A stretch of DNA of 63,496 nt, taken from Mobula hypostoma. Lineage: Eukaryota. The stretch is taken from NCBI RefSeq assembly GCF_963921235.1, contig NC_086106.1, positions 32,798,001 through 32,861,496 of the forward strand, given 5' to 3'. The position numbers were made by a program, and so were the translations under genes. The notes below the pieces were generated by a model. That model was given only the letters and a program-made list of their open reading frames with translations. It made no database searches and was not told the origin of the DNA. Below are positions 1,533-63,345 of the stretch, piece after piece (the stretch's first letter is position 1; the number at the start of each line of letters is the position of its first letter).

Positions 1533-2440
1533 TTAATTTGTTGGCGATTGTGATACTGTCCCGAGGAAGATGCGGTCTCTCCAGATGTATCACGCGGTAC
1601 TTGGTGTCCATGGCGGTGACGGATCTGTTGGTTGTTATCTCCACTGTCATATTCAATCGGATTACTGCCCTTTATTCTCAATTTAGTTTTATGTCCTTGA
1701 CTCCGTCTTGTACTTTGAAAACGGTGATAATCTATGCAGTCATCGAGAGTTCGGTCTGGTTGACAGTCGCTTTTACCTTTGATCGATTCGTGGCCATTTG
1801 TTGCCAGAAGTTGAAAACAAAATATTGCACCGAGAGAACGGCGGCATTTGTCATTGGGACAATCTGTGTGTTGAGCTGTTTGAAAAGCGTCCCATGGTAC
1901 TTCATCTACGAGCCGCTGTACATAATTGACAATAAGCCCTGGTTTTGTACCAGAAAATTAATCTACAGCACATTACTGGCGTGGACATTGTATGATTGGT
2001 TTGCACGGATTTTCAACCCAGGGCTGCCGTTTGTCTTAATTATACTCTGCAATGTGATAACGGTGAGGCACATTCTTGTGGCTAGCAGAGCCCGCAGGAA
2101 CATCAGGTCCCAGATTAATAGAGATAAAAACAGCGATCCAGAGATGGAGAGTCGGAGAAAGTCTATCATTTTACTCTTCCTGATCTCCGGCAGTTTTATC
2201 CTTTTGCGGATGACCTATGTTGTAGATTTCCTCAGCATCGAAATTTCACATGAACCATATTTCAGTGGTTCCAATTTCAGTGACCCCAGGTTCATTCGCC
2301 AGGAAGTTGGAAATATGCTTCAGCTGCTGAGCTCTTGCACTAACACCCGTATTTATGTGGTGACTCAGAATAAATTTAGAGAGGAGTTGAAAAATGCAGC
2401 ACTATATTTCTGGGATCGAATTGCTACGTTAGGAAGATGA
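1533..2440 (+). CDS. GPR139-like class A GPCR, main (second) coding exon, TM1 C-half to stop
   Basis: Open frame: NLLAIVILSRGRCGLS, MAVTDLL (TM2), TFDRFVAICC (DRY-like), LPF (TM5), DPEMESRRKS, CTNTRIY (TM7). A pyrimidine tract plus AG at 1531-1532 gives a phase-1 acceptor. The ORF-track start at TTG 1538 is not a true start, and exon 1 was not found. Confidence 0.88.
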
Positions 2441-2462
2441 AGGTGCAGCAAGCTGCGGGTAC

Positions 2463-2499
2463 AGTTACTCGCTAGTTACTCGCTAGTTACTCGCTAGTT
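2463..2499 (+). repeat. 11-bp tandem repeat (AGTTACTCGCT)x3.4
   Basis: Direct reading, just 3' of the GPCR stop. Confidence 0.95.
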
Positions 2500-4389
2500 T
2501 AAAACCTGTCATCGTTCGACCTGCTGTTCTGTAATAAATTGGTCTCTGCCGATAAATGGACGATAAATAATTGGCGCTCTTCAACTCGCATGATTATCTT
2601 TTCACTGATGTTAGAAATATGTCCATTGAACATTTGAATCATGAAGCTCACCCTAGTCTACAATCATATCTTTTCTACTGTTTTGCGATTTCCCAATTGG
2701 CTTTTAATTACTTGACTCCGGTGTCCACCCAATTCCACTTTCCAATAACGCCAGAAGTATAAGGTTCCTGATTATAGTTACTCTCCGAGGGCGAATTTTG
2801 TTTTAACCATACATTTCAGTTTTGGCTGTCGTTATAAAACTCTTACACCTGAGTTTTGTAGCATTAAACCCAGTCAACTGTTGTTGCATTAACCGAATCA
2901 GTCGGTCATATTCCAGGCCAGTTATCTACAGCTTTTTCAGTTAGTCATAGTTAAAATCCTTCCTCTCTGGTGCTATTGTAATAATGCATTTTGAAATCCT
3001 ACCTATATGGTTTCTGTATTGTCGTGGGCAGTAAGTTATGCTATACCCCAGGTAAGCCTAAGAAGTATATTACAAAGGTTCAGGACAATGTACCCGCTTT
3101 GCTACAGTCTAATGCGGTGCATGAAATATTGTAATAACAGTGTGACTTCCGATATTTCGAAGTAATGAAGTGCAGAGTCTTAGACCATTTACCATTCGGC
3201 AATCACTCCTCCCATGGAGCCGTCTTGGCGAATCTTTCCTGCATCACATCTCTGGCAGTAGATTCCTCGGCAATCTTGTTTCGTGCATGTTAGACAAGGG
3301 ACATAAAAATGGAAACTGCTCGGAACGCAAGTACATCAGACTATAACTATGGAAAAGGAAAAAGATGAAATATCTCATGAACCACCTTTTATCAGCTCTG
3401 ATCAACAGGAAAACAATGACGTAGTCCCGGCAACAGGGAAATGCGCACGAAACGAAATAAGAGTTCATGAATAAAACATATGACACAACCACCGTATATT
3501 ATGCTATCTGTCAATACCTGTTGGGAGATGGCATAATTTACGACGCTTGTGTAAAATGTCACTGATGATGTCGTTGTGTTGGCATGATTATCAGACCAAT
3601 AGTACTTTTAAACGAATTGTAGAAGATTTATTTCTTCGATAGTCAAGAAAAGAAAGAACGTACGCTAATTTTAGGGAATTAGACATAACGTCCGAAAGAC
3701 TGTCCTGAGGATGGACAATCAGAAGACGAATTGGATCACGTTGTCCCGCCTACCATATGTATACATTCTGTCAGAGAGGATTCAGATTAGTTCAGATTCG
3801 CCAGGTTGCCAAGAATTAGACTGATGATGCCCCCAACCCACCCGGAGTGTTGAGCATGACAACTATTGTGGCCATTATACTAAAGTGAAAAAACAACGGT
3901 CTTCCTGAAAGCGTGTTGTTGTGTCTCTGCACAACTACATACCGATTAAATAAAAACACGTACGCCGGGGGTGGCTTTAACTGGGGTATTCACACTGCAA
4001 CAAGAGAGAACAATGCGTATGGCGTAGACAACAACGCAAACTCAAACAAAATTTATATCCGTAATGTTAAGTGGGGGGGGGGGGGGTCATTGCTCTAAAA
4101 GAAATAGATCCATACATTACACTTCATCGGCCTTCAGATTAATGCAAAATAAAACTGTACATGTACAAAACATTCAATTTCCCTTCATAACCCACAGTCC
4201 AAATAAACATGCTTTCACAATGACAGTCCATAAGTGACATCACAGTTCCAAAGATTCGGACTTTGAGTAGTGCTCTGTTTCTTTCATAATGGTGCCTCTG
4301 GACCTGTGGAGTGGCATCAGGTTTGGCAGGAGCCTTGTCTGAGACAACGTTCTCGGTTTCCAGCGTCACGGTGCTGACGGTGACATCAT

Positions 4390-4745
4390 CACAGGCTGCC
4401 TCCTGCCAGAGGCCTCATTTGAGTGCTTTGACTAAGCATGCCACATACAAGCCTGTCCCTCAGTCCATCTCTAAAGGCACACACTGGGAAAGTTTGCGCA
4501 GTTCAGCAATGTATTCAGAAAAGCTTTCATCTTTTGACTGGTTCCTTCAGTCAAATCTAAATCTCTCAGCTATTGCTAGAGGTTCAGAACTCAAGTGATT
4601 TTGTAAAATTGTAACAATTTCATCGAACGTCTTCCTTGCGGGCTTGTCAGCGGTTACTAGGGCTTTCCTTTGCTCCTTCACGTTGTTCGTGTTGCAATAC
4701 AGTTCAACCTTCTCGATATACGACTCCCAGGCTCTGCAGCGTGTT
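4390..4745 (-). mobile_element. Ty3/Gypsy gag fragment, decayed
   Basis: WESYIEKVELYCNTN...FDEIVTILQNHLSSEPLAIAERFRF, then GLRDRLVCGM in another frame. Confidence 0.75.
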
Positions 4746-5595
4746 GTGTCCTTGAGCAAGCTGCATCGGCCCTTGCCCTTCCCTTGGAAAATATCGGTGG
4801 CATGGAGATGGGAGACTTGCAGCATGGGCAACTGCCGGTCTTCCATTCCTGGGAGGTTATCAACGCGGGGTCTAGGATAGTATATAAAAAGACACGGCAT
4901 TTAACTTCCCGAATTCAATGCATGCCCTTAGCATGCCATCCTTCTTGGGGCCGAGAACCATATGAATGCTCTGACTATTTGAAAGCTTCATGGCTCCCAG
5001 CTCCAGAATGGTCCGAATCTCCTCCTTCAGGGCTCTTCAGGTCGCTCTGGCACTCTGTAATAGTGTTGGCGTACTGAACCCTGGTCAGCCTACAGCCTAC
5101 AGAGAAGAAGTCATCACCCTGACACAGTCGTGTCAAGAAAAGAACCTCTCCCTGTATGTGGCAAAACAAAAGAGCTGGTTGTGGACTGCAGGAGGGCCGG
5201 AGGCAGGCTAACCCCTATTGACACCAATGCATCTGGGCTTGAGAGGGTGAATAACTTCAGTTTACTCGGTATTCACATCACCGAGGCCCTCATCTGGTCT
5301 GTAGATACCGGCTGTGCGATGAAAAATAAAGCACAACAGGACTTTATCACCTCAGGCGGTTGAAGAAGTTCGGCATGAGTCCCCAGATCCTAAGGACTTT
5401 CTACAGGGGCACAATTGAGAGAATCCTGATTGGTTGTATCACTGCCTGGTATGGGAACGGTACCTCCCTTCATCGCAGGTCTCTTCAGACAGTTGTACGG
5501 ACAGCCCAACCGCATCTGTGGATGTGAACTTCCCACTACACAGGACGTTTACAGTGTCGCGTGCGTTAAAAGGACCCAAAGGATCATTGGGGACC

Positions 5596-6091
5596 CAATT
5601 CAGATATGTCCATACATGGCCTCCTCTACCGCCATGATGAAGCTAAACTCAGGTTGGAGGAGCAACACCTCATATACCGTCTAGGTAGTCTCCAGCCCCT
5701 TGGTATGAACATAGAATTCTCCAACTTCCAGTAATTCCCTCCCCCTCCTTTCCCCTACCCCTATGTCACTCTGCCCCCTCCCCCAGCTGCCTATCACCTC
5801 CCTCATGGTTCCGCCTCATTCTACTACCCATTGTGTTTTCCCCTATTCTTCCTTCACCCTTCCTGCCAATCACCTCCCTGCCTCCCCTCCCCCACCCCTT
5901 TATCTTTCCCCTTACTAGCTTTTCACCTGGAACCTACCAGCCTTCTCCTTCCCACCCTCCCCCTACCTTTTTTTATAGGGCCTCTGCCCCTTCCCCCTAC
6001 AGTCCTGATGAAGGGTTCCGGCCCGAAACGTCGACCGATCTTTTCCACGGATGCTGCCCGACCTGTTGAGTTCCTCCAGCGTGTTGTGAGT
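5596..6091 (+). mobile_element. Penelope-like element 3' fragment (GIY-YIG C-terminus plus pLTR)
   Basis: SDMSIHGLLY...LRLEEQHLIYRLGSLQPLGMNIEFSNF*, pyrimidine-rich UTR and hammerhead motif; flanked by 10-bp ATTGGGGACC duplication (5586-5595, 6092-6101). Confidence 0.88.
6001..6035 (+). ncRNA. minimal type I hammerhead ribozyme motif in pLTR
   Basis: GTC-CTGATGA-A-GGG(TTCCGG)CCC-GAAAC-GTC|GAC. Confidence 0.7.
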
Positions 6092-6267
6092 ATTGGGGAC
6101 CTAAGGCACCCCCAACCAGAATTTGTTCCAGCTGCTACCATCCGGGAAACAGTACCACAACATGAAAGCCAGAAGTAACAAGCTCCGGGCCACCTTGTTC
6201 CAGTGATTAATTCAGACTGATTAATTCACGCTGACACAATTGTATTTTTAAGCTATATTGACTGTTC

Positions 6268-6846
6268 CTGGTAGCTTTATATCGCAAGATGCTAGAAGTA
6301 AAGTAGAAATAAAAAGAGGAACCGAAATTGTCAAAACCAACTTTCGAAAAATGAAACTAATTTTTACCAATAGACACATTTCTATGACAACAAGACTTAG
6401 GCTACTGAAATGTTACATCTGGTCAATCTTGTTATATGCTTCCGAAACATGGACTATAACACCAGAACTCCAAAGAAACTTAGAAGCAACAGAAATGCAG
6501 ATTCTTAGAAGAATGCCGAAAATATCATATAGAGATAGGGTAACTAATGAGACAGTACTCCAAAGTGCCCATACAAAAAGATGTTTAATGAGTACATTAC
6601 ATGAGAGGAAACTTGAATTCCTGTGCTATGTCATCAGAAATAGAGAAATAGAATGCCTTACGTTACATGGCTGTATGCCCGGGAAACGCAGAAGAGGAAG
6701 GCAAAGAAGAAAATATATGGACACTGTGAAAGAACTAACAGGTATAAGTGTGCGAGATATTGACGCTGCATGGGATCGTTCTATGTGGAAAGCCATGATC
6801 GCCCAAGTGTGCAACGCACAAGACACCTGAAGAAGAAGAAGAAGAC
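6268..6846 (+). mobile_element. RTE-clade LINE 3' end
   Basis: RLRLLKCYIWSILLYASETW...GKRRRGRQRRKY; (GAA)n tail; 9-bp TGACTGTTC duplication (6259-6267, 6847-6855). Confidence 0.88.
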
Positions 6847-7535
6847 TGACTGTTCTGTTGTATATCTTACTGTATATACTATTTATTACAAATTACTATA
6901 ATTTGCCAATTACACATCAGACAGAGACGTAACTCCTCACGTATGTGAAAAATGTAAGAAATAAAGTCAATTCAATTCAATTCATATCATTTCAATTCAA
7001 TTCAGGTCTGATCCTGATGGAATCTTTGAGGACATTTGTCAGTCTTGGTCTCTGGTGAAACAGCTGTTAAAAGTCAGATAACTCCATTTGCAGCTCAGTT
7101 AGGTGCTAGCCAGCGATATTGCAGAGGTCAACCTTCCCAAGCCTCTTAATATCATTATTAATAGGAACTTCATCTGTACAAGTCTCAACAGAAGGAGGAG
7201 AGCGGGCGTATTTCTCAAGGTTCTATTGCGGGCATGACCTTCTAGGCCCTTTGGGTCCTCCCGTGCACAAACTAGCTTCCAAGTCAGGAAAAGGTTGTAA
7301 CTCAGCCATTGCTTAGTTTTTAACACGAGTCACGACAAACTAAGAAACAGCACTCTCTACCCCTGGATTAACAAATGGATGTCATCGGCTATTTCCTTTC
7401 TTCAGTAACTTTGTAACACAGGCAAATCTACACCCCCCCCCCACCCCCAGAATCATGACAGCTGGTAGTCTCTCCAGCACCATGAAATTCATCAAATACT
7501 TATGGCTATCCAGCTCAGTGGTGAGTTCTGCCATA

Positions 7536-9830
7536 AAACCATATGACATAAGAGAAGAATTAGGCAATTTGGCCCATCGAGCCTGTTCCACTATTTCATC
7601 GTGGCTGCTCTTACCTTCTCTCCATATTCCTTTATGTCCTAATCAAGAATCTGGTATTCTCGGCATTAAATATACGTAAAGTCTTTGCCAGCGCAGCAGC
7701 CAGTGGCAACAAATTCCACGCATTCATTACTTCCTGGCTGAAGAAATTCCTCCTCATCTCCGTTGTAAAGGGTGCCCCTCTATTCTGAGGCTGTGTCCTC
7801 TGGTCCTAGACTCTCCACCATAGGAAACATCCTCTCCACTCTATCGAGATCTTTCATCATGTGATACTTTACAATTCCAGTGAATACAGGTTCAAAGCCA
7901 TTGAACGCTCTTCATATGGTAATCTATTCAATGCTGGAATCAAGTTCATGAAATTGCTTTGAAGCTTTTCCAGTGTCCGCACATCCTTTCTAAGAAAAAG
8001 GGCCCAACACTGCTCACAATACTCCAAGTGAGGCCTCACCAGTGCTTTATAAAGCCTCAACATTACATCTTAGCTTTTATATCCTAGTCCTCTTGAATTG
8101 AGTGTTATCACTACATTTGCCTTCGTCACTACCGATTCAACCTGCAAATTAACCTTCAGGAAATCCTCCACAAATAATTCCAATTCTTTCGAGGGAGAAG
8201 GAGGAGAAGATGGCGGCGCGACGCAGAGCGCGCGGCTGTTCCGAATCATAAATATCGTATCTGTGAAGTAGGATGCCGTGCGCAATCCTGATTTGATACA
8301 GACGGACGTAAAGAAGCACGGAGGAACATCTGGAGAAACTTCTGAACTGGCTGCTTCGCTGTCGTGGCTACTGTGCGATCGAGAATCACCAGAGGTAAAG
8401 GCCCCAAATCCTCGGCCTTGCCTATTGCCTGTTGCCGGGGCCGGGGTCGAAGCGCTCGGCAGAGATGGTGCTCGGTGTCGGAGAGCTGGTCGGAGGCTCG
8501 GAGTTTTCGGACGGACTCGGATTCGGACTGTGGTCAGATGCTTCCGGGATGCTGCATCGGCAAGTTTGCGGCGCTGGAGGTTCACCGTCTCCGTGAGATA
8601 ATGGGACTTCCGAGAGACCTTGAGATTTTACCGTGCCTATGGTCTGTTCTTATTAAATTACGATATTGCTTGCACTGTTGAAACTATATGTTACAATTAT
8701 GTGGTTTTTGTCAGTTTTTCAGTCTTGGTTTGTCATGTGTTTTCTGCGATATCATTCTGGAAAAACATTGTATCATTTCTTAATGCATGCATTACTAAAT
8801 GACAATAAAAGAGGACTGCGTGTCCTCATAATCTAATCTAATCTAAAGTCCCTTTGCGCCTCATATATTTGACTTTTCTTTCCATTTATAACATTGTCAA
8901 CTCTTCTATTTCTTCTGTCAAAGTGCATGACCATGCACTTCCTGACACTATATTCCATCTAACACTTCCTTGATCGTTCTTTTTCTATATTCTCTATTCT
9001 TCCTCAGAACTATCTGTCCCTCCACCTATCTTTGTATTGTCCGCATGCGTTAGAACAATGCCAGCAGCAATTCCGTCGTACAAGTTATTGACATATAACA
9101 AACAAAGAAGCGGTCAGAACACAGTCCGCTGTTGAACACCACTAGTCACAGGTAACCAATTAAAAAAAGGTTCCTTTTATTCTCACACTTTGCACTTTGC
9201 CTACTGCCAATCAGCCACTGCTTTATCCATGCTAGTATCTTTCCTGTAATACCATGGTCTCTGAACTTGATAAGCACCCTCATGTGTGGCACCTTGTCAA
9301 ATGCCTTCGGAAATTAGAAGTACACAATATCATGCGATTGTCCTTTGTCTATCCTGCTTGCTTTTCATCAAAGAATTACAACAGATTTGTCATTTAAGAT
9401 TTTCCTTTGAGGAAACCATGCTGACTGCGGCCTATTTTATTATGTGTCTCCAAGTACCCCGAAACCATATACTTAACAATCGAATTCTACATCTTCCCAA
9501 CCACTGAGGTCAAACTAACTGGCTTATAATTATCTGTCTTCTGCCTCTTTCCCTTGTTGAATAGTGGAGTAATGTTTGCTATTTTCCAGTCTCCCGTAAA
9601 CATTTAAGAATCTAATGACGCAATCTAATGATTAATCTAATGATTAATGACACAATCTCATCAGCTTCTCCATCAGAACCCTGGCTTATACACCGTCTGG
9701 TCCAGGTGACATATCTACTTTAAGATATTTAAGTTTCCCAAGATCCTTCTTCTTAGTAATGGCAACTTCAGACACTTCTAACCCATTGACACTCTCGAAC
9801 TTACAGCATACTGCTAGTGTCTTCCATAGT
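7536..9830 (-). mobile_element. CR1 LINE RT/3' end, decayed, with nested insertion
   Basis: MLRLYKALVRPHLEYCEQCW (7869-8063), 3' tail near 7540, and RT remnants continuing past 8846. Confidence 0.75.
8191..8846 (+). mobile_element. non-autonomous LINE-dependent element
   Basis: GC-rich 5' end with AAGATGGCGGC, AT-rich 3' end with AATAAA and (ATCTA)n tail; splits a CR1; no credible protein. Confidence 0.6.
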
Positions 9831-10299
9831 GAAGCTTCTTATTGTGCTGCCGGAACTAGTTGGAAAAGGATTCCTGCTTCATTTACTCAAAAGCCCTTCG
9901 CTTATACTCTTCAAAGATGACAAATTCAACGACAAGTTGGTTTTCAATTTGGAAGCAGGCATGCAAGTTAACGTCATCGGTATCCTGCATCTTATTTACT
10001 TAAACTGGAGTACCTTTATTTCCATCTGTGTGTGGCTTCCCTATTAATCTCTCTTTTATGAGAACTCCAGCCTTGTGTTTAACGTGTTGAGTCTCAATAT
10101 AGCGGAGAGAAGAGCGCGTTTCACAGAATTAGTTTATTAGATTGACGTTGGCTTTAATAGTGATCGGAATTTTCTTTCCAGTGTTCGTAGTAAAGAAGGA
10201 TATTCTCTCGGACATCTAACATATAAGTCAGTTATATCACAATGGCTAAAACATTAGAATAATTTTCCTTACAGTACATATTTTCTTAATTTTAAGTAC

Positions 10300-10420
10300 T
10301 TCTATAACATTATCTGTTAGTGTAAGTTTCTGCAAATGAACACGTTTTCTCTGACTTCATTTGATACTTTCGAGAGGCTGCACTTTCCTTGCAATAGGAT
10401 CACAATCGTAACAAAGTTAG
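10300..10420 (-). pseudogene. GPR139-like GPCR relic A (start of main exon)
   Basis: Acceptor TCTCTTACAG then (A)NFVTIVILLQGKCSLSK, homologous to the start of the 1533 exon; then VFIC-QKL resembling VAICCQKL after an apparent deletion. Confidence 0.7.
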
Positions 10421-10699
10421 CTGTAAGAGAGGTGGAGAAACCGGATGATAATTGGTAGCCAGTCTTCTGACAAGTTTATCAGTAAAAGGGCGGATATGAA
10501 ACTCACATATTTGACAGCTGATTCGGCGATTAAAATAGATCGATTATCTACTTTTGCATTAAAATAATTATTCCAAACGCACATAAAATATCGAATGTAA
10601 CATATGATACAAACGTTGGTTCCAAACATAGGAAGACTTTCGTGTTTCAGGAGACTGAATTCATCGTTTAAAAATCAAACCGACCAACAATTTTAAACA

Positions 10700-11257
10700 A
10701 CATACATCAAAGTTGCTGGTGAACGCAGCAGGCCAAGCAGCATCTATAGGAAGAGGTGCAGTCGACGTTTCAGGCCGAGACCCTTCGTCAGGACTAACTG
10801 AAGGAAGAGTGAGTCAGGGATTTGAAAGTTGGAGGGGGAGGGGGAGATGCAAAATGATAGGAGAAGACAGGAGGGGGAGGGATGGAGCCAAGAGCTGGAC
10901 AGGTGATAGGCAAAAGGGGATACGAGAGGATCATGGGACAGGAGGTCCGGGAAGAAAGACGGGGGGGGCGGTGACCCAGAGGATGGGCAAGAGGTATATT
11001 CAGAGGGACAGAGGGAGAAAAAGGAGAGTGAGAGAAAGAATGTGTGCATAAAAATGAGTAACAGATGGGGTACGAGGGGGAGGTGGGGCCTTAGCGGAAG
11101 TTAGAGAAGTCGATGTTCATGCCATCAGGTTGGAGGCTACCCAGACGGAATATAAGGTGTTGTTCCTCCAACCTGAGTGTGGCTTCATCTCCACAGTAGA
11201 GGAGGCCGTGGACAGACATGTCAGAATGGGAATGGGATGTGGAATTAAAATGTGTGG
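10700..11257 (-). mobile_element. Penelope-like element 3' fragment
   Basis: VATHFNSTSHSHSDMSVHGLLYC...GMNIDFSNFR*; 15-bp CAACAATTTTAAACA duplication (10685-10699, 11258-11272). Confidence 0.88.
10760..10795 (-). ncRNA. minimal hammerhead ribozyme motif
   Basis: Minus strand AGTC-CTGACGA-A-GGG(TCTCGG)CCT-GAAAC-GTC|GACT. Confidence 0.7.
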
Positions 11258-11299
11258 CAACAATTTTAAACACGTGAGAGTTCTAATAAGTTACAGCGT

Positions 11300-11470
11300 A
11301 GTACGTGAAATATACAAAGCTGTACAGAGCAGTAATTTTATTAAAAAGTCAAACAGAACTATGAAGGGACTGGAATCAGATTATAGAGAGCGAGAAATCA
11401 TGAAGACTCAAAAAATAACTTCAGTAACTGTCGTTCAAACATTGACTCTTCTTCAAGAATAGAAACATGT
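11300..11470 (-). pseudogene. candidate GPR139-like relic B (ICL1-TM2)
   Basis: Minus-strand FNKITALYS versus FNRITALYS in the 1533 gene; upstream LFLKKSQC-LNDSY*SYFLSL loosely aligns with VILSRGRCGLSRCITRYLVSM. Confidence 0.4.
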
Positions 11471-13988: not shown

Positions 13989-15254
13989 TATGGACGTGCG
14001 AGTTGACATAAAGCGCAGTTACTACATATAGTTAAATGTACAACAGACTTATTACTACTGGCGCTGTCAGAAGTAATGTATACTGGGTGGTAACAGGGTA
14101 TTTAGAATTCTCACGGCTGGGTGCGAGAAGCTGTTACCCAACTTTGTAGTAGTGTGGTACCTTCTGCCTGACGGTAGGAGGTCTAAGAGATTACGGGACG
14201 GATTGTGCAGGTCAGACAGATAGAAAACGGAAGCTGATACAGAAAATAATGACAGGTGATCATTTTAACGATCAGTTACATAAGTCGATGCCGTGACAGA
14301 ATTATTGCCATTATCCAGTTTGAAGTAGAGCATTTTTGCATTGCCGTGTAGATCTACAATCGGAACAAATAGAGCGTAAACCGAGATGAAGTCAAGCCGA
14401 ACGGGAAAAGGGTCAATAGAATGTTAGCACTGATTTCAGAGCAATACAAGGCATTCATGATCATGACCCGTGAAAGAATAAGACAATGCTGTAAAATAAA
14501 TTATTTTTGTAATAATCCAATGAGAATAATTATAGGAAGAGATTCCCTTTGTCAAGAGACGTTATTACGTTCGTATTTCATTAAGAAAAGACAACGAATA
14601 ATCAGTGGATAATCAGAGCCCCCACACGGAGACTGAATAGTTATAATCAACGGGACATTTAGCTATGACATGGTCAAAAATTAAATAATATCTTATTCAT
14701 ATAAACTTTACAGACAACCCCGAAAGCGGCGAGAACAGAATAATAAATCGCAAAGACTGGTCCATTTCCAGGCGCATGCATTTCCCGTGACGATGTGGAG
14801 GTAAGCCGTAGTCACTGAAAACAAAGTATTTGACGCGTCTATTTATATCTGATGTCAACTACCAGAGAGACCATTCGGTTGAATCGTCACAATTGTTCAT
14901 TACAATTTTCTGAGCAAATTAAAGCAGTCGTGTTCAGGCGTATGCTAATCAATCCAGCCGAAAACATTAAAATTTAAGACCAATTGATAAAGCTAAATAA
15001 ACCAATTGATTCAGCTAAAAACAGAATCCTTGTATCTGATGAGATAAAGGTAAGCTGGAAATAGATTAGAAAGACTGTGGATTAGTACCGGACACGCAGT
15101 AAAGTAAAATTGAATGTGAAGTGGTAATATGACATGAAATTGACTGAAACGCAGTGCGAAGCGATAGGAAAGATTGATTTTAGGTTATTGGGAATTTCAC
15201 CCTTGTGACCGATAGATCCGTTCAAATATATTGAATGACCCGATTCATTAACCA

Positions 15255-15715: not shown

Positions 15716-16009
15716 TGTGTACATCGGAAGTTTATTATCAAAGTACATATACGTCACAGTTTCAATGATGGGGCGAATGAATTTGAGTGAGGTTATCCCC
15801 AATATCCGTGCTGGGTTCGAGCTGGTGATCTCTTTGGAAACTCACCCGGCAGAAGCATGGCAAACCACTGCTGCAACTTGCCTGGTACGCGGTTCCCCAC
15901 TATGTCAGAGAGGTGTGGAGGGAGATCGTCCACGAACCGGAGAAACTCCGGATGCGACGTACCTTTCCTTTCCATCCCCACTAGTTCAATAGTCTGATGG
16001 CTGAAGGCT

Positions 16010-19690: not shown

Positions 19691-19984
19691 GCGAGGTTGT
19701 TTTTTCCGACACCACTCAACCAAGTGATGAGTTTTCCTTCTGCTAAATGAAAACTTCCAACCACGTCGGACGAGCTCCATCTGCCCGCAGTGACTGGTGT
19801 TAAGGCGCCAGGAACCCGCCTTTGTCCCTTCTCCTGTCAGTAGAAACACAGACAAGAGACAGGATAAGGAACAAAAATAATAAGGGCTGCCAATAAACAA
19901 GAAATAAATATCACCACTGCCAAATTTGTCAAATCAAAAGCGTTCACTCGCCCTTTTTTCTAATATACAATGGTTCAGATTAAT

Positions 19985-26008: not shown

Positions 26009-26039
26009 CTCTCTCTCTCTCTCTCTCTTTCCCCTGAAA

Positions 26040-26930
26040 AAATTATTTTGTGGCGATTGAGATCCTATCTCGAGGGAAATGCGGCCTCTCCTAATGTATC
26101 TCAACTGACCTGGTATCCATAGCAGTAACGGATCAGGTGGTCGTATTCGCCCAGGTCATCATCAACCTGCTCAGGGGGATGCATCTTCCGGGTAGTTTCC
26201 TGTCAGTCACTGCTGTGTGCGGTGTCACCAACTTGCTAACATTTGCAGCCAGTGTCAGTTCAGTCTGGTTAACGGACAGCTTTACTTTTGATTGATTGTT
26301 AGTTATTTGCTGCCAGAAACTTAAAACAAAATATTGCACCGATCGGATGACGGCAGTCGTTGTAGGGACGATCCATTCGCTGAGCTCTTTAACCGGCATT
26401 CCTTTTTAACGTCATACATGACCCGATTTATGGAGATTATAATGTACCGTGATGTTGCAGAATGAAGGAAATCCGCTATACTTCACCCGTGGGAATGGTA
26501 TCTGAGTGGTTGGACAGCATCACGTTCCCCTGTCTCCCGTTCCTTTTGATTTTGCTGGTCAATGCGCTGACGTTCAGGCAGATTCTGGCCACGAAGCAAG
26601 TCCGCCAGAGGTTCCAGGTTCAGAGCAGTTGAAGAACTCAGAGTGATCCGGAGATGGAAACCCAGAAAAAGTTAATCATTTTCCTGCTTTCCTTCTCGGG
26701 AAGTTTCATCCTGTTATTGATGACGTATATTATGCTGTTTCTGCGGGTGCCCGTTCTCAAAGACTACAACTTTCAATGACCCAATGACTCTCGGTTCATT
26801 CTGCGGGAAATCGGATACATGCTTCAGCTTCCGAGCTCCTGAACAAACCTACATTTATGCAGAGATCCGATCATTTCTAAATGGGTGAAACAAGGCGGCC
26901 AAGTATCAACTGAATCTCCTTTCTAACTTC
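26040..26930 (+). pseudogene. GPR139-like GPCR pseudogene, whole main exon
   Basis: VAIEILSRGKCGLS*CI, SSVWLT.SFTFD*, ICCQKLKTKYCT, PCLPFLLILLVNALT, SDPEMETQKK, SGSFIL, RFILREIGYMLQL; several stops and frameshifts; collinear with the 1533 gene. Confidence 0.9.
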
Positions 26931-31790: not shown

Positions 31791-33411
31791 TTGGAGGAAC
31801 CTTTCTATTATGGTTTAAAGAATCGAGGGGCGGCACTGCATGCTGGGTGCCAACAAGATGTTTGTACCTGCCATTGTGGGCTCCCGTGCCATAGCTTTGC
31901 CATTCCTAATAATTCAAAGATCTTCAGTCCGTGGCCAATTAACCGAAATAAATCATGATGTATCTTAGATTCAGGTTGGTTCGCCTGTATGGTTCGCAGT
32001 TCCTAAAAATTAATCTAATAATTAAAAAAAAACGGTGCTACATTTCTATAAACTTGATGTGGTCTTTCTCCCATCGATACCTATCGGTTTTTATACTATT
32101 TTCTAACAGAATTCAACTCCTGATCATTTTAAGTATAGTAAGCCATGTTGTTCCCTGTCCACATGTTCGCTTCGTCTGTCGCTCATGGCAAATTCGTGCT
32201 ATTTTAGTTTAAGTCCGTGTTTTAACAATTATATCGCTTATTAATATGCATAATGTTATATCTGACATCAAAGGCTCAACACTAATTCGATCGAGCCACG
32301 TTAAAAGCATATTTTACCTCTTAAAATCCACTGTTTTTAATGGGGAGGGAGATCATTTATTGATTGCTTTGCATCTTATTTTAAATTCTAGATTAATTCA
32401 TCAAAAGTATTTTACTGTGTTACAGCCTTAAAATTTCAAGTGTGTCTTTCACCTTGTGGCTTAGGCTTCTTCGCATATTCAGATATAATTCCGTTTTCCA
32501 GTACTAGTCTGACCTGTTATTATTTACCAACACCTGCTAATGACCTACCAATACACAGTCATATCTGCTGCACGTAACTGAACACTGCCCTTTGTCAACG
32601 AATCACAGAATAATAGGCAGAGGGGCGAACGCTCCTTCTAATATATTGCTGCATTCCATAGCTAAATATAGAATCCGCACAGCAACAAATAAAGCATATT
32701 ATATTGCAGTTCAATTCCCGCCGTGGCATTTCAAATGTACTCAAATACAGCATAAATATATGCCTTATGAGTACAAATGCTTTGGATTAGATTGTTATCT
32801 GAACTCGAGATCAATTCAAATAGCTAATACAGCACCTTAGGCTCGTTTCCGTACATTAAAACAAGTCAGAATCTATTTTGAGCACATCTTTTTGATTATT
32901 ACATTATTCTCATATTGTTAGCAAAATATTACTCTCTAGAAAAAAAAGTCAGGTTTATATGTGAACGCATAGACATTAACTGACCCTCTAAACTACACAG
33001 ACTAGCCTGATGAAATTTTGATGAAAAGGTGTGCCAAAATAACATCTGGTAATAAACCGTCATTGAATAAGTTTTATTCTGGTAAGTACGATCCCAAACA
33101 TCTTTTGAAAGTTTGTCCATTAGTGGTATTTCAATTCTGTGAACTGTAACGCTTCAAACTGAGATTCAGTGACCTTACCTCGCCGTTGAGTTCGCTTGAA
33201 ACCTTAACGTGGCTAAATGAGTAATGGTTGGTTTAAGAGCTGATAAAGCAACACAAAGAAAGCGGAAAAAACTTTCGGGCAACCTGTTTCCACAGAGCTC
33301 ATTGTTGAGAGATATTAAAGGAGTGCAGCTTAAGGCTTGCGGAAATGGCTGTTAATCTTCTCTCTCACAGACGATAGTCTCCTCTGGTTTAATCTTTCTC
33401 GAAGGATACCT

Positions 33412-33450
33412 AGTATTTGTACAGACTCCGACGTCTCTTGCTTCTCTGTG
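33412..33450 (-). promoter_or_regulatory. 23-bp-spacer recombination signal sequence of V1
   Basis: CACAGAG + 23 nt (AAGCAAGAGACGTCGGAGTCTGT) + ACAAATACT directly after YFCAV. Confidence 0.9.
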
Positions 33451-33721
33451 TGTACTGCACAGAAGTAAGTTCCGGTGTCTGTCGGGCGTAAGGACGAGAT
33501 GGTTAAAGAACTACGGCTCTCTGAACTCTGACGAGTAGCTGTAAATCGACCACTGTATTCTTCCTTCTCCGACGCCATTATCAGGAATTCCGGTGCTTCG
33601 TCTGGATGCTGCACAAACCAATACATCTCCGAGAATGGGATGGTCGCTTCACAATGCATCACCATGGTCTTCCCCTCGCTGGGAGCTTGCGATGGAGACG
33701 ATTGCACCAGGTTTTCCTCAC
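33451..33721 (-). CDS. TCR alpha/delta-like variable segment V1, V exon
   Basis: Acceptor TTGTTCTAG; EENLVQSS..EGKTMVMHC, MYWFVQHPDEAPEFLI, GRF, SLTISSLRPTDTGTYFCAV: both Ig cysteines, the tryptophan and the DxGxYxC motif; open frame; followed by an RSS. Confidence 0.9.
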
Positions 33722-35773: not shown

Positions 35774-37363
35774 ACACTCACAACAAGCTGGAGGAACTCA
35801 CCAGGTCGGGCAGCATCCGTGGAAACGATCAGTCAACGTTTCGGGCCGGAACCCTTCGTCAGGACTGAAGAGGGAAGGGGCAGAGGCCCTATAAAGAAGG
35901 TGGGGGGAGGGTGGGAAGGAGAAGGCTGGTAGGTTCCAGGTGAAAAACCAGTAAGGGGAAAGATAAAGGGGTGGGGGAGGGGAGGCAGGGAGGGGATAGG
36001 CAGGAAAGGTGAAGAAGGAATAGGGGAAAACACAATGGGTAGTAGAAGGAGGCGGAACCAAGAGGGAGGTGATAGGCAGCTGGAAGAGGGGGCAGAGTGA
36101 AATAGGGATAGGGAAGGGAGGGGGAGGGAATTACCGGAAGTTGGAGAATTCTATGTTCATACCAAGGGGCTGGAAACTACCTAGACGGTATATGAGGTGT
36201 GGCGCCTCCAACCTGAGGTTAGCCTCATCATGGCAATAGAGGAGGCCATCTATGGACATATCTGAATGGGAATATGAAGCAGAGTTGAGGTGGGTGACAA
36301 CCGGGAGATCCTATCTGTTGTGGCGGACGGAGCGGAGGTGCTCGACGAAGCGGTCCCCCAATCTGCGTCGGGTTTCACCGATGTAGAGGAGGCCACACCG
36401 GATGCAATAGATAACCCCAACAGACTCACAAGTGAAGTGTTGCCTCACCTGGAAGGACTGTTTGGTGCCCTGAATGGTGGCAAGAGAGGAGGTGTAGGGA
36501 CAGGTGTAGCACTTACGCTTACACGGATAAGTGCCGGGTAGGAGATCCATGGGGAGGGATGTGTGGATCAGGGAGTCGTGGAGGGAACGATCCCTGCAGA
36601 AAGCGGAGAGGGGTGGAGAGAGAAAGATGTGCTTAGTGGGGTGGGGGGGGGGGTCCTGTTGAAGGTGGCGGAAGTTGCGGAGGATAATGTGCTGGATCCG
36701 GAGGCTGGTGTGGTGGTAGATGAGGACCAGGGGAACTCTGTCCCTGTTGCGGTGGCGGGAGGATGGGGTGAGGGCCGAAGTGCGGGAAATGGAGGAGATG
36801 CGGGACGGGGCATCATTGATGAAGGCAGAAGGGAAACCGCGATCCTCAAAGAAAGAGGACATTTGAGATGTCCTGGAACGGAAAGCCTCATCCTGGGAGC
36901 AGATGCGGCGGAGACGGAGGAACTGGAAATAGGGAATGGCATTTTTGCATGTGGCGGGGTGGGAAGAGGTATAGTCGAGGTAGTTATGAGAGTCAGTAGG
37001 CTTGTAGAAGATGTCACTGGACAGAATGTCTCCAGAGATGGAGACCAAGACATCGAGAAAGGGGAGAGAAGTGTCCGAGATAGAGCAAGTGAATTTGAGG
37101 GCTGGGTGGAAGTTAGAAGCAAAGTCGATGAAATTGACGAGCTCAGCATGGGTGCAGGAAGCAGCACCAATGTAGTCGTCAATGTAGCGAAGGAAAAGTT
37201 GGGGAGCAGTACCAGAATAGGTTTGGAGCACAGACTGTTCCAACGAAGAGGCAGGCATAGCTGGGACCCATGCGAGTGTCCATAGCTACACCCTTGCGCC
37301 ACTCTCCTTGCCATGCGAAGATACCTACGGGCGCTGTCCCTCTTTCTACCGGTGCCACGCCCG
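35774..37363 (-). mobile_element. Penelope-like element, 5'-truncated, RT plus GIY-YIG plus pLTR
   Basis: GVAMDTRMGPSYA, FLRYIDD, LPFLD, YKPTDSH, VIYCIRCGLLYIGETRRRLGDRFVEH; 15-bp TAGGCAATATAATCA duplication (35759-35773, 37364-37378). Confidence 0.93.
35830..35867 (-). ncRNA. minimal hammerhead ribozyme motif
   Basis: CAGTC-CTGACGA-A-GGG(TTCCGG)CCC-GAAAC-GTT|GACTG. Confidence 0.65.
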
Positions 37364-43640: not shown

Positions 43641-43675
43641 AGACACTTCCTTTCTCTCTGCATATAAACGACTTC

Positions 43676-47755: not shown

Positions 47756-47774
47756 GTGTCCTCTCCCTGTTTAC

Positions 47775-48027
47775 ACAAAATAATCTGCAGATGCTGGGGT
47801 CAAAGCAACACTCAAAACACGCTGGAGGAACTCAGCAGGTCGGGCAGCATCCGTGGAAACTATCAGTCGACGTTTCGGGCCGGAACCCTTCGTCAGGACT
47901 GCAGCATAGGGCCTCTGCCCCTTCCCCCTACAGTCCTGACGAAGGGTTCCCGCCCGAAAAGTCGACTGATCGTTTCCAAGGATGCTGCCCGACCTGCTGA
48001 GTTCCTCCAGCGTGTTGTGAGTGTTTC
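47775..48027. mobile_element. palindromic Penelope pLTR-only insertion with two opposed hammerhead motifs
   Basis: Inverted arms 47807-47901 and 47931-48025; 16-bp TCCTCTCCCTGTTTAC duplication (47759-47774, 48028-48043). Confidence 0.88.
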
Positions 48028-53830: not shown

Positions 53831-53989
53831 GGAAGTTTGTTAGAGCGTTTAATGTTAGAAGTATTGGAGTATTGAAGTGAGGTAGGTATTCCACATTACA
53901 ACACAGGTTACACATAAAATGTGCTTAATTGTGGCTTAGTAGACGAGGAAGATTTCCGCAGTAAATAAGGCAGAGAAGCCACAATCGGG

Positions 53990-56900: not shown

Positions 56901-57990
56901 AACTTTATTGCACTGCAACTCATCCCACTGGCTACAAATTTGCCCCATCACCTGCCTGTCTTTCCTGACATCTTTACTGCTCATTATCTTAGATTTATTT
57001 CTGTTTCCCCTTTCTCCGCTCTGTCATCCCGGTTCCCATCCCCCTGCCAAATTAGTTTAAACCCTACCTAACAGTTCTATTAAACTTTCCAGCCAGGATA
57101 TTCGTCCCCTTCGGGTTCAGGTGTAACCTGTCCTTATTGAACAGGTCATAATTCCCCCAGAAGAGATCCCAATTATCCAAGAATCTGAAACCCGGCTCCC
57201 TACACCAGTCTCTCAACCACACATTCATCTGCCTTATCCTACTATTCTTGCCCTCGCTATCACGTGGCACAGGTAGCAATCCCGAGATTACCTCCTGGAG
57301 GTCCTGCTTCTCAGCTTCCTTCCTAACTCCTGGAAATCTCTCTTCAGGACCTCCTCCTTAGTCCTATCTATGTCATTGGTACCAACATGTACCTAGACAA
57401 CTGGCTGCTCACCCTCCCCCTTTAGAATATTCAGGACCCGATCTGAGACATCCCGTACTCTGGCGCCTGGGAGGCAACACACCATGCGGGTATCTCTGTC
57501 AGGCTCACAGAATCTCCTGTTTGTTCCCCTGACCTATGGAATCCCCCACGACTACCGCATTTCTCTTCTCCCTCTTTCTCTACTGCACAACAGCGCCAGG
57601 CTCAGTGCCAGAGACCCGGTCACCGTGGGCGTCCCCTGTCAGTTCATCCCCCTCAACAGCATCCAGAACAAGATATTTGTTGCTGAGGGGGACAACCACA
57701 GGTGTGCTCTCCACTATCCGGGCATTTCCCTTCCTTCTCTTGACAGTGACCCAGTTTTCTGACCCCTGTAGCCTAGGGATGACTACCTCCCTGTAGCTCC
57801 TGTCTATCACGTTTTCACTTTCCTTAATAAGCAGTAGGTCATCAAGCTGCCGCTCCAGATCCCTAACACGGTCTCTGAGGAGCTGCATCTCGGTGCACCT
57901 GGCGCAGATGTGGCCATCAGGGAGGCTGGAGGTCTCCCAGGATTCCCACATCTGACACCCTGAACAAAGCACTAACCCTGCAGGCATGCT
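53990..57990 (-). mobile_element. near-full-length CR1: ORF1 (CxxC, coiled coil, SGNH esterase) plus ORF2 (APE, RT), frameshifted
   Basis: CSGC..CARC; DRLHLNPKGTNILA; LYLNAHSIRNK, AITETWL, VGDFN, SDHN; DFQKAFDKLPH, FADDTKIGG; tail at about 53990. Confidence 0.92.
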
Positions 57991-58134
57991 ATCTAATTCT
58001 ACAGGAATGAAACATTTGAAAGATTTTCTGACCCACTGGCTATAAATGGCCACAAGTCTTCAGTCCTTATATTCGTTTATCGTTTTGCTAATTTTTGTGA
58101 TCACGGGTTCCCAGTTTTAATTTTATTGTAGATT

Positions 58135-59322
58135 ATTTTCAAAAGGCTTTTGACAAGGTCCCACACAGGAGATTAGTGTGCAAACTTAAAGCACACGGTA
58201 TTGGGGGTAAGGTATTGGTGTGGGTGGAGAATTGGTTAGCAGACAGGAAGCAAAGAGTGGGAATAAACGGGACCTTTTCAGAATGGCAGGCGGTGACTAG
58301 TGGGGTACCGCAAGGCTCAGTGCTGGGACCCCAGTTGTTTACAATATGTATTAATGACTTGGATGAGGGAATTAAATGCAGCATCTCCAAGTTTGCGGAT
58401 GACACAAAGCTGGGTGGCAGTGTTAGCAGTGAGGAGGATGCTAAGAGGATGCAGGGTGACTTGGATAGGTTGGGTGAGTGGGCAAACTCATGGCAGATGC
58501 AATTTAATGTGGATAAATGTGAAGTTATCCACTTTGGTGGCAAAAATAGGAAAACAGATTATTATCTGAATGGTGGCCGATTAGGAAAAGGGGAGGTGCA
58601 ACGAGACCTGGGTGTCATTATACACCAGTCATTGAAAGTGGGCATGCAGGTACAGCAGGCGGTGAAAAAGGCGAACGGTATGCTGGCATTTATAGCGAGA
58701 GGATTCGAGTACAGGAGCAGGGAGGTACTACTGCAGTTGTACAAGGCCTTGGTGAGACCACACCTGGAGTATTGTGTGCAGTTTTGGTCCCCTAATCTGA
58801 GGAAAGACATCTTTGCCATAGAGGGAGTACAAAGAAGGTTCACCAGATTGATTCCTGGGATGGCAGGTCTTTCATATGAAGAAAGACTGGATGAACTGGG
58901 CTTGTACTCGTTGGAATTTAGAAGATTGAGGGGGGATCTGATTGAAACGTATAAGATCCTAAAGGGATTGGACAGGCTAGATGCGGGAAGATTGTTCCCG
59001 ATGTTGGGGAGGTCTAGAACGAGGGGTCACAGTTTGAGGATAGAGGGGAAGCCTTTTAGGACCGAGGTTAGGAAAAACTTCTTCACACAGAGAGTGGTGA
59101 ATCTGTGGAATTCTCTGCCACAGCCAACTGTTGAGGCCAGTTCATTAGCTATGTTTAAAAGGAAGTTAGATATGGCCCTTGTGGCTACAGGGGTCAGGGG
59201 GTATGGAGGGAAGGCTGGGTTCTGAGTTGGATGATCAGCCATGATCATAATAAATGGCGGTGCAGGCTCGAAGGGCCGAATGGCCTACTCCTGCACCTAT
59301 TTTCTATGTTTCTATGTTTCTA
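58135..59322 (+). mobile_element. young 5'-truncated CR1 with open RT C-terminus
   Basis: 349-aa uninterrupted ORF (GVPQGSVLGP, FADDTKLGG); (TTTCTATG)n tail. Confidence 0.93.
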
Positions 59323-60624
59323 TTCCATTTCACACCAAAATGGATAACTTCCAGGAACCTCAGAAAATAAATTAGTTGCAGATATTCCCAATCCGTTAAT
59401 CGATCAACATATAATTCAATGTCACGGTCCCTTCTATACAATGCAATAATTCCTTATCCTCTTGATGAACACATTTCTTCTCATCTCTGTTCAGAAAACA
59501 TCTTTAGCTGACATATTGTTCTTAGAAAGAATTAGATCTGATTAAAGCATTGAATAACAACCGAGATCTGCGCAAATGATTTTCTTCCCTCTGTGATGCA
59601 GAAATTTAGGGTAATTTTTGATTGGTGTATTACGACTTTGAAATGGACGCTCCCAAACAGGGATAATATTTCCCCATTACTAGCGAATCTAACGCAAAAC
59701 TGAAAAGAAAACAATTTGAATGCCATTCGCAAGAACAGTTCAGAGTGACTCCATTGCAGAAGGATAGGCGTTCAATCTACTCGTTATTTAAATCACTATT
59801 TTCGTGAGTGCGTCAGTGTTGCTAACAGACGCAGAGACTGAATATTTGATTTCTTTATCTTCAATTATTTAAAATATTTCAATGTATTGATGTCAAAACT
59901 CGTGGCATTATTGTCATCATATATTAAGCATGTTACGAACCTCATGTAGGAAAATGGAGTTACTGTAGATGGGTAAATGGTCGGATGAACCCTCGTGGAC
60001 CAAAGGGCCCGTTTGTTTCGGTAGAAGTCTATGAGTAGAAAGAAAACAAACCTTAAATTGTGTTAGAGCAGAGATGCATACGTTTTAAAGGAAGATGTGC
60101 TGACAGTTGGCCAGCATTGGATTGAATGGGGAGTCTAGAGTCTGCAATATGCGCGCGTGGAAATCCTGAACATGCTGCAGTGCGTTCTACAGCTTCTGAG
60201 CCGTTGTCTACCGAGCGGATGACTGCCAGTTAGTGCATTATGGCTCTTTAGTACTTTTCCTCTCTTCACAGGTGCTCTTGGCCTTCATGCAGCCTGTTGC
60301 GCTTCTAACCATATCGTCACCAGCCGCACTGTCAGGAATGGCGGGTTTAGATGCATATACAACTGCCAATTCTGAGCGTTTCTGCAAATCAGAATGTTGA
60401 CTCCGACCGATTTCTATCCGTGAAAACAGTCCGGATGGGGGAATGGTGCCTTTATGCTTTTGGGTTAATAAATTAGTCCCTGGAACGACATACTGTTTCA
60501 TGCGGAGAGAGGCGTAAAACCGTTTTTCCCTAAACCTTCGATCCCAAGTTTAAAGAACTCCCGTTGAGTCGAAAAACGAGAGAAAGTGGAACTACTGCGA
60601 TTAAGGGGCGAGGCAATAACACTA

Positions 60625-61790
60625 TAAGACATGGGGGCAGATAAATGCTGATTTATTATCACTCCGCAATCCATTTTCCTTCCTTCTCCCCGAAACTATC
60701 AACTCCGTCATCCAGATCATTAACCAGAGACTCCCCTTTGTCTACCCTGCCGGTTATTTCCTCAAAAAATACCAACTGATTTCTCAGACGAGATTTCCCC
60801 TTATGGGAACCATGCTGACCGGCCTATTTTGTCATGTGACCTGAACTCTCATCCTTAGTAATGGACATCAAAATCATTCCAATAACTGAAGTCCAATTAA
60901 CTGGGCTTTAATTTCCTGTATTTTGCCTCCCCCCCCCCCTTCTTAAAGAGTGCAGTGACATTTGCAATTTTCCATTCCTCCTGAACCATTCCAGAATATT
61001 TTGACCTGTGAAATATCAACACTAATGCCTTCACAACTCTTCAGCTAACTCTTTCAGAACCCTGGGATGTAGTCTATCTAGTCCAGGTGATTTTATCTAC
61101 CTTGCAGCTTCCCAAACACCTTTGCTGTAATAATGGCGACTGCATTGACTTCTGCCCGTTGATACTCTCGAATTTCTGACATACTGCTGGTGTCCTCCAC
61201 AGTGAAGACTGATGGAAAATACATATTGCGTCCGTCCGCCATTTCTTTGTATCCATTATTACTTCTCCAGTGTTATTTTCTAGCAGTGTGATATCCGCTC
61301 TCTCCTCTCTTTTACTCTTTATATATCTGAAAAACTTTTGGTATCCTCTTTTATATTATTGACCGCCTTAACTGTATATTTCATCATTTCTCTCCTGAAT
61401 GTTTCTAGTTGCCTGTCGATATTTAAAAGTTCTACCTGCCAATTCTCTACCTTCTTAATAAGTTTTTATTGGACATAATTATATGCCCACATTTTTTGCT
61501 TTTATACTGTCTTTGAATTCCCTTGTACCCTCATCCTTATTTTATAGTAATACTTGTTCTTTGGGGTGAATATATTCTGTGTCTTCCAAATTACTCCTAG
61601 AAACCCTAGCTGGGGTAGTTCTGCCGTCGTCCTTGCTAGTGTGGCCTTCCAATCGACCTCGGCCAGCTACTCTCCCGTGACTCTGTAATTCGCTTTACTC
61701 TGCTGTGATACTGATACATCTGATTTTAGCTTCCCCCCCTCAAGCTGTAGAGTGAATTCTATCATATTACGAATACTGCCTCCTAGTTCA
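60625..61790 (-). mobile_element. CR1 APE/RT fragment, decayed
   Basis: SPGPDRLHPRVLKE-like and SHKGNL-like remnants. Confidence 0.65.
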
Positions 61791-62000
61791 GCTCACTAAT
61801 TAAATCGGTTTCATTAAACAATACCCAATCCAGTTGAACTCATAAAGTGATTTAACTGAAGAATAAATAGCGGAAAATTAGAACCTATTTCATATAGCTA
61901 ATATCCTTCACCAAATCCGCCACAAATCAAATTAAGAAGGATATCTATTGCAGTGGATTTGTGATTAGAATTCACAAAGCCGACAAGGCCTTGTCCTGCT

Positions 62001-62039
62001 AGTTTTTGTATTGGAGCCCAGGGATATTGTAACGTGGTG
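62001..62039 (-). promoter_or_regulatory. 23-bp-spacer RSS of V2, non-consensus heptamer
   Basis: CACCACG + 23 nt + ACAAAAACT after YYCAAKR. Confidence 0.8.
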
Positions 62040-62347
62040 CCTCTTGGCCGCGCAGTAATACACGGCGGAGTCGGAGAGCTCTGTGCGTGAGATGTTTAAA
62101 GGAATGCTTTTGTTAAGTCTCTCCTGTTCTGCGTTAAACCGTTTTTCGAAAGCTGGCGCGTTCACTTCAAACTTGGATGTGTGCCTGACCAGCATATACT
62201 GCAGTCCACTTGCCGCGTATTGGACGTACCAAAAAAGGTAAGCGGCTGTGTATGTGGCCGGATAGCTGCACGGCAAAATCGCAGTACTCCCTTCATTTAC
62301 CACCAAAACTGAAGGAAATTGGGACAAGCTGTCCTCAGAACTAGCTT
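62040..62347 (-). CDS. TCR alpha/delta-like variable segment V2, V exon (leader uncertain)
   Basis: Acceptor AATTTCAG; ASSEDSLSQ..EGSTAILPC, YLFWYVQY, KRF, SIPLNISRTELSDSAVYYCAAK; open frame. Confidence 0.9.
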
Positions 62348-62624
62348 CTGAAATTAAATGATCAAATATTAATTAACAGAAATGTAAAAAAAAGACAGCG
62401 ATTTTATATCTTAGACAGTATCTATACTTTAACAACAATAAACGTCGGAAATGCTGAGTCGAGTTTTTCGAAAGACGAATAAAAACAACAGACGGGTAAT
62501 TAAATTGCCATGTACTGTCAGATTATAACCCTTCCAGCGCACCCTTTTGCGGTGTCTGGGAACAGGAAAATCACTGAGTTCATAGCCTAACTTTGATAAC
62601 TTTTATCCTTAGCCTAGTACAGTT

Positions 62625-62763
62625 NNNNNNNNNNNNNNNNNNNNNNNNNNNNNNNNNNNNNNNNNNNNNNNNNNNNNNNNNNNNNNNNNNNNNNNNNNNN
62701 NNNNNNNNNNNNNNNNNNNNNNNNNNNNNNNNNNNNNNNNNNNNNNNNNNNNNNNNNNNNNNN
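62625..62763. other. assembly gap (139 N)
   Basis: Run of n. Confidence 1.
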
Positions 62764-63070
62764 TCACTACCCCTCCTGATAATGCCGTAAGAACTCACTA
62801 CCTCTATAGAATGCATCATTAATTTCTAACAAAGAAAATTCCAAAATGAAATAAGCATTACAATCGCATTAAGTACATACCCGGTGATATAGATACGAGG
62901 AAAAGAAACACGTTGATACATAATTTTAGGATCCATAATGTGCAGTGGTAATAATTGGCAACGTCCATATTTTATTGCACCCGATCGAAAACAAACCTGA
63001 ATGCTTGTTATTTTAAACTGCCAATTGCATGAGTAGTGTGTGATTAGATGCAGTATGTGTATTTCAGCAG

Positions 63071-63345
63071 TGAACCTCTACTGGGTGCAATCTTGCTTCT
63101 GATAGGTGGAGTATAGACAAGAGGTGGATGAAGAATGAAGAGTAAACGAATTATAATCGTGATAGATGTTTCAGTGTCGTTGATTTTGATAGGCCCGTGT
63201 TATCTCATTGACATTTTATTAGTGAAATACACTGTTGTGGCTGTCATATATCTCTCGCACATTAATTGATGCCTTATGAGTTGTTTCAGAAAATTCCAGA
63301 TACTTCCAGGGTGTAATGTCTCTTATTGTTTTATTTGCCTGCATC
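63071..63345 (+). pseudogene. candidate GPR139-like relic D
   Basis: Acceptor TTTCAGCAG then (V)NL..GAILL; MKSKR--IIIVIDVSVSLILIGPCYLIDIL aligns with MESRRKSIILLFLISGSFILLRMTYVVDFL; QILPGC with QLLSSC. Confidence 0.45.

Follow-up and report, generated by a model that had tools for sequence, protein, structure and literature searches.

The stretch analysed here, called the window, is 63,496 nucleotides of the ray Mobula hypostoma (contig NC_086106.1, positions 32,798,001 to 32,861,496). It carries a small cluster of rhodopsin-type orphan receptor genes, members of a family annotated as GPR139-like, beside two variable (V) segments of the T-cell receptor (TCR) alpha/delta type. We regard this neighbourhood as probably old and inherited, with the receptor genes as passengers that now decay in the ray. 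If the V segments belong to the locus that they resemble, the window is probably the far V end of a TCR alpha/delta region. Three real receptor copies were identified: one with an open exon, designated G1, one truncated gene on the minus strand, and one pseudogene near 26 kilobases (kb). Relative to both V segments, designated V1 and V2, all three are on the side that the recombination signals face (Table 1).

Receptor sequences were identified by scanning all six frames of the window with a profile made from 93 members of the family. G1 covers profile positions 23-322 with an E value of 7e-155. The open frame at 1538-2440 was classified as a rhodopsin-type receptor by Pfam (7tm_1, E 6e-22). 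A polypyrimidine tract followed by AG at 1531-1532 (CCCCCAG, 1526-1532) provides the acceptor, and the exon limits proposed in a first-pass annotation of this DNA were correct to the base. Two motifs mark the family, FDRF after helix 3 and, in helix 7, N-T/P-x-I-Y; of these, D, R, N and Y are invariant in the 93 members. G1 has FDRF and NTRIY. It departs from the family at 3/83 columns that are conserved in at least 95% of members, which is within the family range. The arginines in LLRMTY and NTRIY were considered as possible damage and rejected. Both columns are variable in the family, which has W/Y/R and F/C/S there, and the two residues are thus not evidence of decay.

The database holds 2579 relatives of G1. 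Of the 120 that were listed, almost all come from elasmobranchs and bear the NCBI name 'probable G-protein coupled receptor 139'; the top match among them is a Mobula birostris protein with 86% identity. The nearest solved structure is human GPR139 (E 1.5e-8), with 125 residues aligned, spanning the first four helices only. Because the match is this limited, the GPR139 name is, judged by sequence, a loose label for the elasmobranch family. Orthology to GPR139 proper would call for close full-length similarity and a single copy, and neither was found. Another hallmark of GPR139 proper is that aromatic amino acids activate it. Profile matches, motifs and exon structure instead place G1, the truncated gene and the pseudogene in the elasmobranch GPR139-like expansion, and the window copies are the same in kind as the NCBI-annotated 'probable GPR139' proteins.

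Members of the family share a plan with two coding exons. Exon 1 consists of 23 codons plus 1 base, a phase-1 intron of ~0.6-8 kb follows, and exon 2 encodes the remainder. The plan is present in the relic gene of the window and at the skate, whale shark and sevengill shark loci (L001, L003, L005 and L006), and gene spans in Mobula birostris, catshark and horn shark fit it as well. Exon 1 of G1 should lie beyond the start of the window, since just 1532 bases precede exon 2 and the introns of relatives have the lengths given above. One annotated relative, protein P0002 of Leucoraja erinacea, has 26 extra residues from a predicted mini-exon inside the intron (L001:10834-10911). They are missing in all relatives, and the mini-exon is therefore probably an annotation artefact.

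The second copy had been noted as a minus-strand relic at 10.3-10.4 kb. The profile search confirmed it as real and added an exon 1 that had not been seen before. The two exons are separated by a 4291-nucleotide intron that runs from a GTAAAG donor to a TTACAG acceptor. Similarity to the family ends after ~18 codons of exon 2, and a stop codon follows. The third copy, reported earlier as a plus-strand pseudogene at 26.0-26.9 kb, was recovered as profile pieces with E values of 2e-19 to 1.5e-3. Its stops are at 26092, 26293, 26450, 26630, 26777 and 26840, and the reading frame shifts between 26406 and 26414. Exon 2 of P0025, a Rhinoraja gene, matches its DNA with 74.5% identity. A (CT)n run occupies 26010-26030, the expected acceptor site just before the pseudogene, and the AG appears to have been lost.

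Several weaker candidates were rejected. Relics proposed at 11.3 and 14.3 kb turned out to be chance matches; the first is out of order with the truncated gene and did not appear in the profile search, and the second had an E value of 28. Two minus-strand profile hits that are colinear with the truncated gene, at 6.39-6.32 kb (E 16) and 5.20-5.06 kb (E 6.8), fall on high-copy transposon sequence. A further proposed relic at 63.1 kb is marginal. It consists of a hydrophobic stretch only, has no neighbouring pieces and lies past an assembly gap, so it was not accepted.

The window has exactly two V exons, both on the minus strand, and a search with a small V profile returned no further V relics. 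Each is open, keeps the canonical cysteines and tryptophan, and has a phase-1 acceptor. Recombination signals with a 23-base spacer were scored with a threshold of at least 12 out of 16. Two sites in the window reached it, and each abuts the end of a V exon. Since shuffled sequence gives ~2 such sites per window, the weight of these signals lies in their exact position at the V ends. The named Atlas clusters nearest to V1 are TCR V alpha, and the solved structures that resemble it include both light-chain and TCR V domains. Among single-domain solved structures, V2 is best matched by TCR V alpha and V delta, and its Atlas clusters are TVA and TCR alpha/delta variable. Database searching gave no match for V1, three distant matches for V2, and no named shark V genes. 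No joining (J) segment or J-type signal was found in the window. A weak CTCF-like box (CCAGAGGAGACT) is present at 33376-33387 on the minus strand, starting 24 bases past the V1 nonamer, and nothing similar occurs at the corresponding offset from V2.

Two suppositions of the first-pass annotation were upheld at this point: that the window has two V segments with recombination signals, and that a class A receptor family that is not olfactory, and is nearest to GPR139, sits beside V segments of the TCR alpha/delta type. The receptors were also said to lie in both orientations and to be interleaved with the V segments. The orientations are as described, but interleaving is not supported within the window because the only piece beyond V2 is the unsupported one at 63.1 kb.

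Table 1. Receptor-like sequences, V segments, recombination signals and the assembly gap in the window.
Feature	Position	Strand	Evidence or remark
G1, GPR139-like receptor, open exon 2 (302 codons + stop)	1533..2440	+	Profile, Pfam, acceptor
Truncated GPR139-like gene, start of exon 2 (~18 codons)	10367..10420	-	Profile positions 21-42, E 3e-4; acceptor TTACAG, phase 1
Truncated GPR139-like gene, exon 1 (23 codons + 1 base)	14712..14781	-	Profile positions 1-23, E 6e-7; ATG at 14781; donor GTAAAG at 14711
Pseudogene, exon 2 only, of a different old GPR139-like clade	26042..26860	+	Six in-frame stops, one frameshift
V1 recombination signal: heptamer CACAGAG, 23-base spacer, nonamer ACAAATACT	33412..33450	-	
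V1, open V exon, TCR alpha/delta type	33451..33721	-	Pfam V-set E 2.8e-16; Cys, Trp and YFC present
V2 recombination signal: heptamer CACCACG (weak), 23-base spacer, nonamer ACAAAAACT	62001..62039	-	
V2, open V exon, TCR alpha/delta type	62040..62347	-	Pfam V-set E 1.9e-13
Assembly gap	62625..62763	.	278 bases upstream of the V2 exon
Marginal receptor-like stretch, not accepted as a relic	63138..63245	+	Profile positions 231-266, E 0.02, hydrophobic match alone

The age of the receptor copies was examined in a tree of 58 sequences. G1 fell in a 14-member clade (98% support) that includes sharks and batoids in an order much like the species tree, and its sister is a Mobula birostris gene. The pseudogene fell in a separate clade (100% support) with skate and electric-ray genes. 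A tree had been proposed as a check for a clade of intra-locus receptors; G1 and the pseudogene did not form one. G1 and the pseudogene share one DNA match, of 349 coding bases at 67% identity, which stops at the coding exon and leaves the flanks unmatched. V1 and V2 are ~23-28% identical. When the window was compared with itself, all internal repeats were of transposon type; no duplication unit made up of a V segment plus a receptor was found, and no shared flanks. Because the two receptor genes belong to different multi-species clades, their flanks are not homologous and the V segments are this divergent, there is no sign of co-duplication or of recent birth, only of decay.

The first-pass annotation had favoured lineage-specific birth and loss of chemosensory-like receptors inside a V array, with receptors and V segments duplicating together. 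Loss is evident, as two of the three copies are dead, and the presence of copies in both orientations in a very large family also speaks for that idea. Birth and joint duplication were not supported. The copies belong to clades older than the ray lineage, a search for paralogous flanks gave none, the V segments are unrelated beyond their fold, and the same association occurs in sharks. We consider this explanation improbable.

An inherited neighbourhood is better in keeping with the other elasmobranchs. In whale shark (NC_063373.1, 4.76-4.79 Mb) the G1 orthologue is made up of exon 1 (L005:8698-8763) and exon 2 (9908-10831). At 5.5 kb upstream there is a V exon that resembles V2 (L005:2880-3170). 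Its Pfam V-set score is 26.2 bits, with the threshold at 26; it and V2 are reciprocal best matches at 37% identity, and it carries a signal with a CATAGTG heptamer, a 23-base spacer and the nonamer ACAAAAACT. A second V relic is found 5.2 kb downstream of the orthologue on the other strand, with the same CATAGTG heptamer (L005:3140-3210 and ~15950-16000 for the two sites). As both relics share the altered heptamer, their sequence suggests an inverted duplication of a V segment that was already disabled. Horn shark has two genes of the G1 clade, on a 59.5-Mb chromosome, and both lie within a V-set gene model of 242 residues that runs on the other strand; two further family members of that chromosome lie in no such model, though these are small numbers. 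The association had been proposed as peculiar to the lineage of the ray, which does not agree with V-type relics flanking the same clade in whale shark and with the placement of that clade inside a V-set model in horn shark. Since the same receptor lineage sits among V-type segments in whale shark, the neighbourhood was probably inherited and did not arise by recent joint duplication. The limited comparative evidence suggests that the association of receptor and V segment may be older than the split between sharks and rays.

The receptors are better preserved in skate. Rhinoraja has its G1 orthologue and that of the pseudogene on the same chromosome (CM130178.1, 4.67-4.78 Mb), ~87 kb from each other, and the orthologue site in Leucoraja is at CM054021.1, 45.05 Mb. 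Within 23 kb of Rhinoraja longicauda DNA there are three family genes (L003: 2703-3599, 12523-13428 and 19369-20274), which makes the skate cluster intact and denser than that of the ray window. The G1 clade accounts for two of the three as a tandem pair, and the intron of one gene is only ~0.6 kb long.

A different explanation is that the neighbourhood is kept by function, either through a shared chromatin or regulatory setting (for example stochastic choice of one gene) or because the receptor is expressed in lymphocytes. In two or more distant elasmobranch lineages the G1 clade is accompanied by V-type segments, and tetrapod olfactory receptor genes occupy the same end of the locus (PMC3457774). 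Against this, the ray copies are decaying, the skate flanks have receptors without V segments, and chance encounters between large gene families are fairly common in DNA that is poor in genes and rich in repeats. We felt that selection for the arrangement was quite improbable.

The chief competitor of an inherited passenger cluster is that V1 and V2 stand outside the working TCR alpha/delta locus, as orphons or dead outliers. The window would then be a GPR139-like region with stray V relics in which nothing rearranges. A number of observations fit this explanation and count against the one that we prefer. The search for leader exons gave no adequate one for V1, where the best candidate has 9 codons, and none for V2 between the V exon and the gap. 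The V2 heptamer matches 4/7 positions. A search for RNA-recorded runs found none holding V1, which is no proof of silence. The whale shark V relics are probably dead by their sequence because the heptamer has lost CAC and one relic is without the first cysteine. Further points count only against the inherited neighbourhood. The V-set model of horn shark may be a gene of the immunoglobulin superfamily that does not rearrange. In skates and sevengill shark, the orthologues have 10-kb flanks in which receptors occur and V segments were not found; those flanks are shorter than the 31 kb between G1 and V1 in the window. G1 itself may be inactive, since no annotated database protein matches it at 90% identity or more, and the few candidate RNA-recorded runs yielded none that hold G1, again no proof of silence. 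On the other side, both V exons are fully open with canonical residues and correctly spaced signals, and the leader exon of V2 may sit in the gap. We judge orphon status to be unlikely on balance, yet a contender to be taken seriously.

We also considered an assembly artefact, with sequences wrongly joined at the gap, close to it, or at some other point of the repeat-rich window. No repeat, gene or other alignable sequence spans the gap, and the abundance of repeats makes an error easier to imagine. The features that depend on the gap are the V2 leader exon and the 63.1-kb piece only. The three receptor copies and V1 are more than 28 kb away from it in unbroken sequence. DNA contigs of a related organism match the flanks at ~95-97%. 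Those of the sister species cover 1-1554 and 2349-4100 in the same order, breaking inside the multi-copy exon of G1. A neighbourhood of the same kind is present in the whale shark and horn shark assemblies, which are independent. A misjoin is very improbable indeed.

The remainder of the window is vertebrate DNA with a G+C content of ~42%. Nearly every long open frame is transposon debris, namely reverse transcriptases and an endonuclease of long interspersed nuclear elements (LINEs), RNase H of long terminal repeat (LTR) elements, and Tc1-type transposase. An extremely high-copy repeat occupies 4600-6000; its summed contig depth reaches several hundred thousand in the DNA run of the sister species, and it is abundant too in runs guessed to be RNA. 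One element is present in inverted copies at 92-93% identity (5595-6095 versus 36270-35772, and 5975-6094 versus 47906-48025). On the minus strand, a 315-residue open frame (36311-37258) without a Pfam hit carries a GIY-YIG-like motif towards its end and probably represents the endonuclease end of a Penelope-like element.

Taken as an inherited neighbourhood, the window can be described as follows. A small cluster of two-exon GPR139-like genes occupies the signal-facing side of two divergent V segments, amid LINE, LTR-retroelement and Tc1-type debris. The receptor genes would not have arisen together with the V segments but would be passengers, comparable to the olfactory receptor genes that tetrapods have at the V end of TCR alpha/delta. 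Decay in the ray has left one copy with an open exon, one truncated and one with several disabling mutations. We infer that V1 and V2 are members of a rearranging locus, and both point towards lower coordinates. If either were to rearrange by deletion, the receptor genes would be within the excised interval and would thus be lost from the chromosome of that T cell.

Should this be true, cartilaginous fish have their own equivalent of the passenger gene families of antigen-receptor loci, drawn from a different receptor family. The G1 clade would then serve as a landmark by which the V end of the TCR alpha/delta region could be located and compared among elasmobranch genomes. The analysis also brings a very large 'GPR139-like' family to attention; no paper describing it in sharks, skates, rays or other chondrichthyans turned up in the searchable literature. 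Neighbourhood alone does not imply a functional link between the receptors and the immune locus. A more far-reaching proposal, which we think rather unlikely, is that a single GPR139-like lineage has stayed beside TCR alpha/delta-type V segments since before the shark-ray split and mirrors the olfactory neighbourhood through a shared need for chromatin that permits one choice among many. The family would then be an undescribed large set of sensory receptors in cartilaginous fish, whose classical olfactory receptors are very few.

Three known systems can be compared with the window. Human GPR139 (structures 7VUG to 7VUJ) is the best solved-structure match to G1, and the two have in common the rhodopsin-type fold and a DR motif after helix 3. 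Human GPR139 is a single conserved gene, whereas the elasmobranch family has thousands of members with a DRF motif and NT(C/F)IY instead of NPxxY. Trypsinogen genes lie inside the mammalian TCR beta locus and are likewise a non-immune passenger family within a rearranging locus. Unlike the ray receptors, they belong to another locus and another gene family, and they encode secreted enzymes. The closest parallel is the TCR alpha/delta locus of tetrapods, in which olfactory receptor genes flank the V end (PMC3457774, PMC8945572), and OR10G3 serves as the IMGT 5' landmark in 6/9 species (PMC8945572). The first-pass annotation drew this parallel, and we consider it a fair one: in both cases an unrelated, multi-copy class A receptor family is situated at or among V segments, an arrangement that is long conserved (PMC3457774, PMC8945572). 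The ray family differs in being nearest to GPR139, in having two coding exons rather than one, in its host, a cartilaginous fish, and in its V segments, which are putative members of a working locus.

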